64,000 bases of DNA. Origin: Paraphysomonas bandaiensis. Taxonomy: Eukaryota > Protista > Chrysophyceae. Under the pieces are notes generated by a model, which saw only the letters and a list, made by a program, of their open reading frames with translations, had not been told where the DNA came from and did not search any database. Each line of letters starts with the position of its first letter. Within the stretch, counting starts at the first letter, position 1. A program made the translations under genes and the position numbers. Below, piece by piece: positions 18,649 through 24,944 of this stretch. The stretch spans positions 124,001 through 188,000 of the forward strand of contig CBFFRP010000058.1 of NCBI GenBank assembly GCA_965644295.1, written 5' to 3'.

Positions 18649-21545
18649 TTAAAAGCTATTGCGAAGTCTTTCTCTAGCGTCTTCAACAGTGGCTCCTGGC
18701 AGAAAACAATTCATAATAGCCTCAAGCTTAACCCGTTTCATCGGTTTGGTGACCACCGCATCAGCACCCACATCTAAAAACTCTTGCACATCATCATCCA
18801 TGGCATTACCTGTGACCGCAATGATGCAACCCAGAAATCCTTTTTCACGAATAATTCGAGTGGCTTCGATACCATTCTGTTTTACCAAAATATCATTCGA
18901 TTGTAAACATTTATACATCAGCTGCCTCACCATTACTGGCATCGTGTAATCCATGAATATAAGATGTAAATCGCGATTTTCCTGGTACATTAAAGTTGCC
19001 TCTAACCCGTTTACTGCAGCCAATGATTTCACTTTGAATTGGGTAAGTAGCCGCTGGAGCATTTTCAAATTCGACGGTGTGTCTATTATACAAAAGTTAG
19101 AATAGTAACACGAGAACGGAATATCTACGCACCATCAACACACATCACACGCCAAGACTGCCTCTCAGGTAGTAACCCACGGTCTGCGGAGGCTATACTG
19201 CATGAATCTTCGTAAATGGGAGGCTCTGTCCATATAATATATTATCCACGATATAATTATCGTACTAAACCAACCTGGGTCACATGTTGCATTTATATTC
19301 CTCGAATTTACATCCTCAAAGCCATTCTTTATGTTGGAATCTGTGGTCATAGGTACTTCATTGGCAATTATTTGAGTGGTTGGTTTAGCAGGTACAATGC
19401 TCCTACTTTCAATCGCTGACATGGAATGCGACCCCCTATCCTCTAAGTATAGATAGTGTAAGCAGACAGGATTGAAGCAATAAGTACTTTTCCAAAATAC
19501 GCTCTAACACATGATACAATACAACAACGGAGTTTACAACAGTGCAAGTTTAACGTTCATAATCAATAATACAATACTAGCAGAGAATTTAACATTTTGT
19601 CATAGGCAACACCTGAAAGTGTGCATCCCTCTTTGATACAGCTCAGAGGAGTCACATCCGCATGGGCTGCTTGATGACGTAAGCTCCATGACAATTCCGA
19701 ACTTTCGTTTGTAAGGACAACATCGGTGTGTGTTGACCTGTTCGAATTGCACCTATTACTGTTGCCGTCTTGCTGCGGTTTTGACAAGCGTGAGTACACT
19801 ACATCTTTCTCGTGGGCATGAACTTGTATAGCACGAAATCGATTTTTTTTTAAAGGCCTACGCAATATTTCCCGGTCATCAACTCTACGCAGATTCAAGT
19901 TTATATTGAAAATTAAACAACCATTTGAAGAGGTTGATAGGTCAACCGTTCCGTTGTGCAGGGCAATTATTTCCTTTGCTATCACTGGAGATAAACCCGA
20001 GAAGCAATCACCAAAGATATCACCGATGAGTAGTGTACTATAAGGTTCAAAACAACAGCGTAGCTCATCCAGTGTCTTGCATGGGTGCTCCGTAGAAAAA
20101 GTTATAAAAATTCCAGTAGTTTCTTCGCTGGATGGACCTCCTTTACAGCTTCCTACTTCAGATGATACGTGAATAGAGATTTTGCTTCCTGCTTTCGAGC
20201 ATGTAATGGCGCTGTTTAACAAATTTACAAGCGCTCTCGTAAGGTAACAACGATCAGCTAGAACTATCTCTGGGAATACCGCCAACGGTGAGAGCTTCAA
20301 CTCAACGTTTCGAGCTGATATTATGCTAGATAATTGGCCGACGACATCTGTCCACACGTCTCTCATAACAACTTCGTGATGGTTCAATAGAAGATTACCC
20401 TCTTCAATTTGCTGCATCGTCAAATAGTCATTGAGTGCCTTTTCCAAGTAGGTAGTGGCGACCACCATGGTTTCAAAAGCTTCTCGTTTCGAGGCTGCAA
20501 CGTCTTCCTCTGACCTATCAGTGCGTAGAGAAGGCTCTGAAACAACATAATCCAAACTCATCGCAAGGGCATTCAGAGGGATACGAGTTTCATATAACAT
20601 GTATCGCACTAATGACCTCAAATGAGAATTGGCTTTGAAATGTATCTCTTGTTCTTCACTAACCGCATGCAAAATAGGTACATGTGCGTCGATGACAGTG
20701 AAGGCCATTAATCCTTTCCCAACAACATCAATCACTAAATAACTGACTAAAGCAGTGGTTGGAGTTAATGCACTGTTCGCCGCAAGGACGTAAACCACGA
20801 AAGATAAAGTCATTGTCACAATCACTACTACAAACAGATCCCGCAAAAGATATAGGCGGAACACTTCGTCATTGAATGCCTTATGACCAGCAGTCATATT
20901 CTTGTCGCACTTTTCCATGCTGACTTTGATGGAAAAATATACGAAGTACAGTGCAAACAAGAAGGAAATCAATCCCACGACAAAAAGAATTATTGTCCCG
21001 TAAATATCAATGCCATGAAATTGCATGGAAAACCCTGTTGCAATGGTCAAAAATATAGACATGATAGCCTTGATATCATCAGACGAGGGGGCCCTCCCAA
21101 ATTCAGGAACCAGTACCGTATACATCAATAACGGGACAGTGATAATCCATGAACACCAATTAGCCGCATAGGTAACAGCACTGTACATAGAATTATTACA
21201 GTAAATGAGTGTTATTGTTTTGATTTCTTACCCCCAGTTATCGATGCATATATTCTGATCAATGAGGGAGATTATATACGATATAACAGTGATAAGATTA
21301 ACAGTTAATATACTCATATTAATGTTCGAATATTTATCTGTATTACTGTATAAGAGATATCTTCTTAATTGACCAAGAATGATCATGCTTATCGCCCCTA
21401 TAGCGGCTGTAAGAGGCGTATTCATCCTATTAACATGTGTGTAATCATATCGACATATAGGTAGATCTGATATATGGATCAGAGTAGTTAATATGACGAA
21501 TAGACATACACAGATGATAGGAATATATACAGATGTGAATGACAT
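18649..21545 (-). CDS. Microbial rhodopsin-histidine kinase-receiver fusion, copy 1 (His->Tyr pseudokinase); spliced
   Basis: Exon 1 21545..21232, intron 21231..21181. Helix C YAANWCSWIITVPLLMYT, helix G YLVIDVVGKGL (retinal Lys), H-box RYMLYETRIPLN, degenerate HATPase, REC VMCVD|DTPSNLKML..FMDYTMP..VTGN..TKP. Confidence 0.85.
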
Positions 21546-22101
21546 TGTTTCAATTAAAGAATATTGTTCTATCTGTTATTCATAGTATGATATGATGATA
21601 TAATGATAGACTTATTGTAATAGTAGTCACTATACACTGTAAATTCATAGTAAATATATGAATTCATAGTAAATCATATCAACTTTTTCACTTCTTTTTA
21701 TGAAGTGTGTTCTTATTGAGTGGCCCTCCAACCTGCCTACTAAGCTAATTTTGACACTTCCACGTCAAATATTTTTATCTCAATACAACCACCTTTTTTT
21801 TTTGGAAAGATCTTGACATGTCTGTACAATTGCTGGTAGTACGATATATTGTACGTTTGTATGTAGATAGAAACGAGTATAACCCATAATAAAAACCCAT
21901 ACTTTCGACGTCATGTACGTACACTGTACATATGAACACACATCAATTTCATGGACAGTAAAGTCCATATATATATATATACATACGACTATATATATAT
22001 ACATGGTTATAGAATTGAGAATATAACGAGATTATTATTCATAATCAACATCCATTAAATAAGAATTCTCTATCATAATAATATCATTACAATCATTCAT
22101 T

Positions 22102-24944
22102 ATGAAACATATACATATTAAAGAGCATCCTTTACTACCATCACGTCCATTAATTATAACAACTAGTGCTATTATACTTTATATTATAATTACTATCCTA
22201 ATACATCATAAAGATTCATATATATGTCATCAAAATTATAAATATGCTGAATGGACTAATTCAGCTGTCATGACTGCTATTGGAGCCTTTAGTTTCTCAT
22301 GTATTATACAATTAAGACGACTTATATATGTTGCTATCTATGAAAATATTGATAGTTCATTCTATATTGTATTCAGTACATTAATTATTAATATTCTTGG
22401 TGGATTTTCTGTTGCACTTGAAAGAATTGATTCGAATCTTTGTGAAGATCAATTTGGGTAAGTCTATAGGAAAATATTTATAGATTCTTTCTTCATATCT
22501 TTTACAGTGTAGTTACCTATGCGGCTAATTGGTGTTCATGGATTATCACTGTCCCGTTATTGATGTATACGGTACTGGTTCCTGAATTTGGGAGGGCCCC
22601 TTCGTCTGATGATATCAAGGCTATCGTATATATATTTTTGACCATTGCAACAGGGTTTTCCATGCAATTTCATGGCATTGATATTTACGGGACAGTAATT
22701 CTTTTTGTTATTAGCTCGTTTACCTTCGTGCTTGCCCTCCACTACATGCTTGTGTCTTACAAGGTGAGTGAGAAGCATTACAATGAGAAGGTAGATTCCA
22801 AAGGACAAGAGTGCAGAGAAGAGAAACATCGATTGGAGTTGAAGTACAAATTGTCGACCACTCTCGCTGTGGTAATGTGTCTCTTTCCAATTGTATACCT
22901 ATTGGCAATATTTGGCGTATTAAATCCAAACACTACTTTGATGAGCTATTTAGTACTGGATGTCGTTGCCAAAGGCTTCGTTGCCTTCACTGCCATGGAC
23001 TCGCACTTATCTGTTTTTTATTCAGTTAGAAGTGAGCTAGAGACACAAATCAAAGCAAATTACCGCAAGCGAGCATTCATGAGGTATATGTTTCATGAGA
23101 CTCGCATCCCATTGAATGCTCTTGCGATGAGTTTGGATTACTTTGTTTCTGAGTCAGCTATTTCTCAGCGCTTATCTGACCATACCAATACTGCATCGAA
23201 GGAAGCACTTGGTACCATGGTGGTCGCAACGGATTATTTGGAAGAGGCGCTCAATAGTTATCTGACCATGCAACAGATTGAAGAGGGTACCCTAGAAATG
23301 AACCTTCAGGAAGTGAATATGAGGGAAGTATGGGCTGATGTTGTTGATATTCTTTCGTGTAAGCTACAACCCAAAGGAATTAGTGTTGATCTAGCTTCCA
23401 ACTCAGTCTTCCCTGTTCAAGTGTTGGCCGATCGCCGCCAAATTACTTACGCAATCAAATGTCTTTTGAACTGTGCGATTTCCCGGTCCAGCTTTGGAAA
23501 TGTATTATCTGTTTCTTTCAGTAGTTTGCGTGGTACTCCGAGAAACAACGTTGTGAACCGTACAAGTCAGGATAAATATACTGTAGAAATTTCTTTTCAA
23601 GACTCCGGCAGTACGTTATCTGAAAAAGAGGTAGAACATTTTTTCGACCCGTATGGAGCGCTGTTTACGGGCGATATGCTGGGAGAGAGTGGCTCGGGTT
23701 TATCTCCTGCAATCGCTTATGAAATTATAGCTCTCCATAACGGTATTGTGGAACTCTCTGTCCCAAGTAGTGGTGGATTGGCGTATTCGATTAAGTTAAA
23801 TCTTCTTACTGTGGAAGAAAGAGTCGTAGCCGACAAACCCTCGAAGCGACGTGCGCCTCATTACTTTGACACGTCAAGCATGCGCAATACTTCTCGCGTC
23901 GGAGTTGCTCCAACGGCGTGCAAAACAGAGAAAACTGCGCGTATGGCTTCCAACGCGACCTCTTTGGAGGGTGAACCGGATGTCAAATTTCAATATACTG
24001 ATGAAACGCACAAATTTGAAGACACTGATATGAGTAACGTCATGTCACCTAGTATTACGACAGCTCAACATTCAGACCCAGATGATTCAAAGACGAAAAG
24101 AAGTGAGGACCTAGAAGAGGATAGTGCTAAAATGATTCCAGCCGATCAAACTACAAACATGTCCGTTTTGTCTATTGAAAAATCAAGAAATCCATCTACA
24201 TATGAGATGGTTTCTGCAGTCGAGGAGACTGTTGCAACGAATCCGGATGCATTGGGAGTTCATTTAGAAACAGGTGCCCCATGTTGATGATATTCCCACA
24301 CGATGCGTAGATAATATATGGCGTGCAGATGACATGACAGATTTGGTTAAAGATCACGGTACGAGAGTAGTAAGCACTGAAGGTGAAAGTAGAGCAGAAG
24401 GTATGAACAGTCGATTGTTGCCAGAAAAATCTGAGATGGGGGTAATGTGTGTCGATGGTAAGCTCGTAGCCCTTATAACACCAAGATGACTCAATAAAAT
24501 ACTCCAGACACACCGTCGAATTTGAAAATGCTCCAGCGTCTACTTACCCAATTCAAAGTGAAATCGTTGGCTGCAGTAAACGGGTTAGAGGCAACTTTAA
24601 TGTACCAGGAAAATCGTGATTTACATCTTATATTCATGGATTACACGATGCCAGTAATGGTGAGGCAGCTGATGTATAAATGTTTACAATCGAATGATAT
24701 TTTGGTAAAACAGAATGGTATCGAAGCCACTCGAATTATTCGTGAAAAAGGATTTCTGGGTTGCATCATTGCGGTCACAGGTAATGCCATGGATGATGAT
24801 GTGCAAGAGTTTTTAGATGTGGGTGCTGATGCGGTGGTCACCAAACCAATGAAACGGGTTAAGCTTGAGGCCATTCTTCAATGCTTTGTTATTGGGGAGA
24901 CTATAGACGTAGCTCGACAGAAATTACGTTGCATGCAAAAATAA
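22102..24944 (+). CDS. Microbial rhodopsin-histidine kinase-receiver fusion, copy 2; spliced
   Basis: Exon 1 22102..22457, intron 22458..22507. Helix C YAANWCSWIITVPLLMYT, helix F MCLFPIVY, helix G YLVLDVVAKGF, H-box RYMFHETRIPLN, G1 QDSG, G2 GSGLSPAIAYEIIALHNG. REC with introns 24458..24507 and 24660..24713. Confidence 0.9.

Follow-up and report, generated by a model that had tools for sequence, protein, structure and literature searches.

The gene described here occupies positions 22102-24944 on the plus strand of a 64,000-nucleotide stretch of DNA (the window, whose positions are used throughout) of contig CBFFRP010000058.1 from the chrysophyte Paraphysomonas bandaiensis (assembly GCA_965644295.1). 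It is one of two head-to-head genes, the second of which (the minus copy) runs from 21545 down to about 18650, and both encode a rhodopsin domain together with HisKA, HATPase_c and receiver domains. We consider it probable (about 0.62) that the region around exon 2 of the plus copy encodes helices C-G of an expressed and selectively maintained histidine kinase rhodopsin (HKR), which belongs to a large, uncharacterised protist family lacking the arginine of helix C and relying on a single carboxylate, in this case an Asp on helix G.

The active site of bacteriorhodopsin (BR), which serves as numbering reference for the pocket sites, is a quadrupole formed by the protonated Schiff base, Arg82, Asp85 and Asp212. 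In the family of the plus copy, only a dipole would remain of this quadrupole, with a single carboxylate and without the arginine. In most members, the carboxylate is a Glu on helix C at the D85 site, accompanied by Ser, Gly or Asn at the D212 site, and in the clade of the plus copy Ser or Thr occupies the helix-C site and the carboxylate is an Asp on helix G at the D212 site. The Asp encoded at 22959-22961 would then probably be the sole counterion and likely also the proton acceptor of the Schiff base, while the side of helix C next to it would be polar and bind water through Asn, Ser and Thr. With Thr at the D96 site, a proton donor would be missing, as expected of a sensor, and isomerisation of retinal would presumably influence the activity of the kinase and the transfer of the phosphoryl group onto the C-terminal receiver. 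The pocket is not counterion-less because the Asp at the D212 site is kept.

Retinal pocket, expression and selection of the plus copy

Exon 1 of the plus copy ends with ...LCEDQF followed by GG, and the helix-C stretch is read from the beginning of exon 2 (from 22508: YAANWCSWIITVPLLMYT), the reading frame of which starts at 22509 (VVTYAANWCSWIITVPLLMYT). With W86, TxPLL and DxxxK as anchors the residue register is unambiguous, and an identical register was obtained by HMMER when the single sequence was aligned to Synechocystis halorhodopsin (SyHR) and when a family profile was aligned to SyHR, CryoR2 and SpaR. The substitutions that a sequence-only reading of this DNA had proposed for helix C (R82 to Asn, Y83 to Trp, D85 to Ser and D96 to Thr, with T89 unchanged) were borne out by the single-sequence and the profile alignments to solved rhodopsins, and D212 and K216 are indeed retained (Asp 22959-22961, Lys 22971-22973). 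The description of the pocket as atypical also holds at position 3.42 (R82 in BR). In a survey of approximately 40,000 rhodopsins, Arg 3.42 was reported as highly conserved in every characterised cluster, the canonical and non-canonical HKR clusters among them, with the sole exception of the pump-like channelrhodopsins (PMC13739731), whereas the plus copy has Asn (22527-22529). Other features that had been taken as peculiar turned out to be more common: the loss of Arg is not special to this gene but extends to the whole family, Ser at the D85 site (3.45) fits the norm of known HKRs, and Thr at the D96 site is usual in rhodopsins that do not pump. The carboxylates at D85 and D96 that characterise outward pumps (DTD/DTE) are replaced by S-T-T, and the combination of Thr/Ser 3.45 with Arg 3.42 that makes up a halorhodopsin-like anion site is not present either, as Ser at 3.45 is paired with Asn at 3.42.

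Two candidates for a displaced charge were considered and rejected. A different carboxylate in place of D85 finds no support, since none of the other conserved acids is buried in a helix beside the Lys: D102 belongs to the B-C hairpin, D140 stands where helix D begins on the cytoplasmic side, and the remainder are in the F-G loop. An Arg at the end of helix B in the plus copy (LERID) is missing in the minus copy and unconserved in the family. In the family alignment, no conserved basic residue was found on the extracellular half, and the conserved Lys and Arg residues lie at predicted cytoplasmic helix ends. In the F-G loop of the plus copy (NPNTT, 22943-22951), Asn stands at two positions where most relatives have Asp, and the sequence contains an N-x-T sequon, which is predicted to be extracellular.

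Transcript data show that the gene is expressed and that its introns are removed. The GT..AG joints of intron 1 and of the downstream introns listed in Table 1 occur in RNA-derived contigs of run X1 and in the marine metatranscriptome X2, with 50 nt skipped between 22456 and 22507 (cut +1) at the intron 1 joint in X1. Run X1 also carries the intron joint of the minus copy (21181-21231) and a 1.56-kb contig of this gene, and the DNA run X11 is unspliced and colinear with the genome. Exons were searched separately, and a public transcript-derived MMETSP protein (P0001, 863 amino acids), which matches exon 2 of the plus copy at 99% identity and spans every downstream splice joint, was used as full-length stand-in. 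Exon 2 alone matched Bac_rhodopsin (PF01036, E 8e-14), HisKA (9e-5) and HATPase_c (2e-5) in Pfam. As expected of a type-1 rhodopsin, PF01036 was also found in P0001 (E 1e-15), and the Schiff-base Lys, W86 and P91 are present. The architecture of an HKR was likewise recovered in P0001, with HisKA at 29.6 bits (cut-off 26.9) and Response_reg at E 1e-20, and the plus copy itself contains the H-box RYMFHETRIPLN and the receiver motif FMDYTMP.

An AlphaFold2 model of residues 1-285 of P0001, computed from a 133-row alignment, reached a pLDDT of 93.4 and a pTM of 0.91 and consists of eight helices, TM0 and A-G, with a beta-hairpin in the B-C loop. Foldseek assigned a probability of 1.00 to many rhodopsins, and the best solved match was the rhodopsin phosphodiesterase Rh-PDE (7d7q, TMq 0.76), with halorhodopsins and sensory rhodopsin II next in rank. 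A look-up in the ESM Atlas returned only generic rhodopsin and heliorhodopsin fold neighbours. Both the predicted helices and the match to Rh-PDE agree with an eight-helix enzyme rhodopsin, in which TM0 precedes helix A and the N-terminus is cytoplasmic. The two Cys pointed out in the sequence-only reading (ICHQ/ICRY and LCEDQFG/ICIDNWG) are kept in 79 of 81 and 102 of 107 family sequences covering the respective columns. In the model of P0001 the first lies in the TM0-A loop and the second in the B-C hairpin, so that both face the extracellular side, and a disulfide between them is plausible.

Helix C is identical in the plus and minus copies, as had been noticed before, but this identity cannot be taken as conservation. 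Two tracts of high DNA identity (Table 1), set in a background of 35-70% identity between the copies, are the result of gene conversion between inverted neighbours. For the first 66 codons of exon 2, the proportion of synonymous differences (pS) between the copies is 0.055, against 0.635 over the remaining codons. The identity of helix C within the pair is due to conversion and therefore says nothing on selection for the motif. Evidence for conservation comes instead from a third paralog elsewhere in the genome and from distant relatives. The rhodopsin domain of the third paralog shares 66% identity with that of the plus copy, and for the codons of helices C-E the comparison yielded a pS of 0.83, at which synonymous sites are saturated, and a proportion of nonsynonymous differences (pN) of 0.145. 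In helix C, VVTYAANWCSW(T/I)ITVPLLMYT, a single residue differs (I/T) and most third codon positions differ. NWC(S/T)W...TVP is also kept in the relatives P0002-P0005, whose identity over the domain is 36-52%. Because the third paralog and these relatives retain helix C, there is strong evidence that the purifying selection on the motif is real.

The protist family and the proposed position of its counterion

When 1.84 billion representatives were searched exhaustively with HMMER, only 166 proteins reached E <= 0.001, and residues were counted over 133 aligned related rhodopsin domains, mostly kinase fusions. Most of the long matches carry HisK, with or without a receiver. The absence of Arg is a trait of the whole family: the R82 site is occupied by Q (59), I (24), M (14), L (13), N (8), H (4), T (3) and R (3), so that Arg is found in 3 of the 131 members having a residue there. 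Glu predominates at the D85 site (E 113, S 8, D 5), and the D212 site contains S 65, N 22, G 20 and D 11. A Lys is present at the K216 site in 122 of 125 sequences, W86 in 132 of 133 and P91 in all 133. Further family-wide replacements affect W182 (F/L/M), W189 (Y) and W138 (L/F). The replacements at the Arg site and in the pocket are conserved across the family and therefore do not represent random decay. When the two counterion sites are considered jointly, 108 sequences combine Glu or Asp at 85 with a non-acidic residue at 212, eight have the reverse arrangement with Asp at 212, three are acidic at both sites and six at neither.

A maximum-likelihood tree, itself unrooted, was computed without the counterion columns and considered with its root at the midpoint. 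Sequences with NSDK, NTDK or NSNK at the 82, 85, 212 and 216 sites form one clade of eight (SH-aLRT 90), which is nested among Glu-type clades and sits within a starred clade of 13 rows that also holds MSDK, MGDK, MDGK and MASK. The three genomic paralogs group together with a support of 100. Within the clade of the plus copy, the D85 site is Ser or Thr and the D212 site is Asp except for two members with Asn (P0004 and P0005). Judged from these sequences, the counterion layout appears to be labile in the neighbourhood of the 13-row clade. P0004 and P0005 (N-S-N-K) as well as P0038 (M-A-S-K) have no carboxylate at either counterion site and keep the Lys; in these three, an anion may act as counterion or the Schiff base may be unprotonated. 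It is a tentative proposal, to which we give somewhat less than even odds, that the Arg-free protist family has a single counterion that changes helices, being a Glu on helix C in most members, an Asp on helix G in the plus copy and neither of them in at least three relatives (P0004, P0005 and P0038).

Standard annotation likely misses the rhodopsin domain in much of the family. In a Pfam scan of ten family proteins (P0001 and nine relatives), six had a Bac_rhodopsin match and four had no match to a rhodopsin family, and Heliorhodopsin (PF18761) was not found at E <= 0.01 among the plus-copy exons or the ten family proteins. In P0024, P0029, P0047, P0112 and P0096, Bac_rhodopsin was not matched at E <= 0.01, yet all helices align and the Lys is present. 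An N-terminal RGS domain (PF00615) precedes the rhodopsin in P0007 and P0112, which come from other organisms; such an RGS-rhodopsin fusion was not met in the literature searched for other topics, in which no search was aimed at this fusion.

To our knowledge, only three kinds of HKRs have been characterised, HKR1, Ot-HKR and 2c-Cyclops, all of them green-algal. The plus copy shares with HKR1/Cop5 and with green-algal and cryptophyte HKRs the order of rhodopsin, HisKA, HATPase and receiver, a neutral residue at 85, Asp 212, the Lys and the lack of a D96-type donor (PMC7693036). Asp or Glu at the D85 site was reported for only 14 of 47 modular rhodopsins, and with D212 kept, this position is Met in Cop5, Gln in Cop7 and Ser in Micromonas MpuRh2 (PMC7693036, table 2B). 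A neutral residue at D85 is thus already common in known HKRs, and the novelty lies in an Arg-free family with a single counterion and in a clade with the counterion on helix G. Besides Arg 3.42, the canonical HKRs differ from the plus copy in W182 and W189, which are replaced in the latter, and the plus copy has no cyclase, sterile alpha motif (SAM) or other output domain after the receiver. Published green-algal and cryptophyte HKRs have T-T at 89/90, where the plus copy has T-V. This green-algal signature is absent from the best 150 of the 166 family matches, and for this reason we regard the family as distinct from the characterised HKRs.

Among solved structures, Rh-PDE of Salpingoeca rosetta (7d7q/7cj3) is the closest in fold and likewise has a TM0 and a long helix G that continues into the linker, but it carries another effector, combines Glu 85 with Asp 212 (PMC7693036, table 2B) and shares only about 15-17% sequence identity. 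Halorhodopsins, with SyHR (7zou) as the best sequence match among solved structures, resemble the plus copy in Thr/Ser at the D85 site and Asp at the D212 site, whereas they keep Arg 3.42 (RYITW in helix C of SyHR) and are seven-helix pumps without a kinase. The heliorhodopsins have the same single-counterion layout as the main branch of the family, Glu(3.45)/Ser(7.46) (PMC13739731), but the solved structures matched by the family are type-1 rhodopsins, and the plus copy has the opposite layout, Ser(3.45)/Asp(7.46).

This separate family comprises at least 166 sequence clusters, many members are missed by the Pfam rhodopsin model, and it breaks two near-universal rules of microbial rhodopsins, Arg 3.42 and Trp 182/189, while keeping the Lys and staying under selection. 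If the counterion indeed changes helices, this would be the microbial-rhodopsin counterpart of the counterion displacement known in animal opsins, and the family would offer natural variants with only the Glu, only the Asp or neither on one scaffold, in which the position of the counterion could be related to colour, Schiff-base pKa and bistability. Provided that the single-counterion reading is correct, its members may also serve as compact rhodopsin-kinase-receiver modules for optogenetic two-component signalling.

Alternative readings of the pocket

Several observations weigh against a single helix-G counterion in a functional HKR as proposed above. The HATPase_c domain of the plus copy scored 25.7 bits, slightly below the Pfam cut-off of 26.4, and P0001 is similarly placed with 25.2 bits. 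The stand-in P0001 combines an exon 1 resembling that of the minus copy (95-96% identical) with exons resembling those of the plus copy (98-99%). This mosaic most likely results from a hop of the transcript assembly across the identical tract or from a strain difference, because run X1 shows the exon 1-exon 2 joint of each gene separately. The inverse relation between the carboxylates of helices C and G is significant on raw counts (Fisher p 4e-7), but the swap rests on essentially one clade with only 2-5 phylogenetically independent contrasts. As the switch amounts to about one event, we do not claim co-evolution of the two sites. Since the tree is unrooted, a counterion that has 'moved' could equally be an Asp that was retained after the Glu was lost. 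Finally, W182, W189 and W138 are replaced by Met, Tyr and Phe in the plus copy, and the geometry of the retinal may differ from a picture based on BR.

The strongest competing explanation follows Chlamydomonas HKR1 and assumes a dark state that absorbs in the UV or is bistable, in which a single distant counterion would leave the Schiff base unprotonated in one of the stable states. This explanation overlaps with the one we prefer and is kept separate for its distinct spectral prediction, a switching between UV and visible absorption. Two published accounts describe HKR1 as UV/blue bistable, the Schiff base being unprotonated in one of its states (PMC8116198; PMC8818676). HKR1 (Cop5) has Met 85 and Asp 212 and thereby the same charge layout as the plus copy save for the missing Arg. 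However, the family is distant from the green-algal HKRs, as reflected in the absence of T-T at 89/90 noted above, and removal of the Arg would be expected to raise rather than lower the pKa of the Schiff base. We therefore regard a dark state of this kind as unlikely, though it deserves to be kept in mind. Under the preferred single-counterion reading, a long-lived or photochromic deprotonated state is nevertheless plausible by analogy because HKR1, with its neutral residue at 85 and Asp 212, has the nearest charge layout.

The first of several options named in the sequence-only reading was an anion-dependent chromophore. Chloride would then be bound near the Schiff base with the participation of Ser at D85 and Thr at T89, and colour and pKa would be tuned by halide or salt. 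The anion site of halorhodopsins is partly formed by Arg 3.42. In the plus copy this residue is Asn, and the extracellular half offers no conserved basic residue of the family in its place. Ser/Thr at 3.45 and 3.49 do recall the TS motifs of the halorhodopsin type, the best solved HMMER match is a cyanobacterial halorhodopsin, the organism is marine and the photochemistry of Ot-HKR was reported to depend on salt (PMC7693036). Moreover, P0004 and P0005, which combine Ser 85 with Asn 212 and lack a carboxylate, would depend on an anion or on a Schiff base that is not protonated. For the plus copy, anion dependence is improbable because the arginine is missing and the retained Asp 7.46 balances the charge of the site without an anion; as an account of the chromophore this option is the weakest, and it fits P0004 and P0005 better than the plus copy. 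A degenerate, non-photoactive 7TM module that merely anchors the kinase in the membrane or scaffolds its dimerisation might be suspected from the replacement of R82, D85, W182, W189 and W138 and from the family members below the Pfam Bac_rhodopsin threshold, but it is very improbable given the near-invariant Lys, W86 and P91, the strong purifying selection on helix C and the family-wide conservation of the replacements.

Paralogs, neighbouring sequence and coordinates

Helix C, the Asp and the Lys of the minus copy are the same as in the plus copy. In the remainder of the minus copy, the His of the H-box is replaced by Tyr (RYMLYETRIP, 20610-20580), the DxGxG G1 box is missing (STEHPC at about 20110-20080) and P186 in helix F is replaced by Phe. 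The gene retains the Lys as well as an intact receiver, the identity of which is maintained by conversion. Judged by its sequence, the minus copy may be a pseudokinase that acts as partner of the plus copy. At IKAI(V/M)(Y/S)IF, P0001 shows a different mosaic, and its mosaic structure suggests that conversion boundaries vary between strains.

Table 1. Positions of the genes, exons, motifs and conversion tracts (window positions unless another reference is named)
Feature	Position	Strand	Content or evidence
Plus-copy exon 1	22102-22457	+	TM0, helices A and B, both conserved Cys (ICHQ, LCEDQFG); open reading frame, helix layout from the AlphaFold2 model of P0001
Intron 1	22458-22507	+	50 nt, GT..AG
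Plus-copy exon 2	22508-24273	+	Helices C-G to about 23000, HisKA, HATPase_c, low-complexity linker
Helix C motif	22527-22571	+	N-W-C-S-W-I-I-T-V-P-L-L-M-Y-T = R82N, Y83W, D85S, W86, T89, T90V, P91, D96T
Helix C codons, first part		+	Asn 22527-22529 (R82), Trp 22530-22532 (Y83), Ser 22536-22538 (D85), Trp 22539-22541 (W86)
Helix C codons, second part		+	Thr 22548-22550 (T89), Pro 22554-22556 (P91), Thr 22569-22571 (D96)
Helix G motif D-V-V-A-K	22959-22973	+	Asp 22959-22961 (D212, 7.46), retinal-binding Lys 22971-22973 (K216, 7.50)
Downstream plus-copy introns	24274-24328, 24458-24507, 24659-24712	+
Plus-copy exons 3-5	24329-24944	+	Receiver domain (LIFMDYTMPVM|NGIEA), Response_reg E 1e-12
Minus-strand paralog	18650-21545	-	Exon 1 21545-21232, intron about 21231-21181, exon 2 from 21180 down
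Gene-conversion tract 1	22505-22710 vs 21183-20980 of the minus copy		Helix C to start of helix E, 93-100% DNA identity
Gene-conversion tract 2	About 24500-24860 vs about 19090-18730 of the minus copy		Receiver domain, intron included, 97-100% DNA identity
Third paralog	G000:C433:205421-207400 (L002 1118-3144)		NSDK motif, intact H-box RYMFHETRIPLN
Model helices of P0001	Residues 3-25, 38-65, 73-96, 110-128, 138-156, 164-203, 208-239, 245-284

A search of the whole genome with PF01036 gave no match, but the controls and the plus copy itself were missed as well. With the family profile, only the three members described here were detected, along with a weak hit at C148:103036-103410 (E 0.002), and no Glu-type member was found in the genome by this search. 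The gene set of the organism thus points to three paralogous light sensors. A carotenoid oxygenase of the RPE65 family is encoded at G000:C133:44778-46226 in a single open frame of 589 amino acids (E 8e-87) and could supply the three rhodopsins with retinal. The two start codons of the head-to-head pair are separated by an AT-rich spacer of 556 bp (21546-22101) with TA-repeats near 21966-21990, which must hold the promoters of both genes. Within this spacer, the DNA run X11 differs from the window by several small indels, the TA repeat included.

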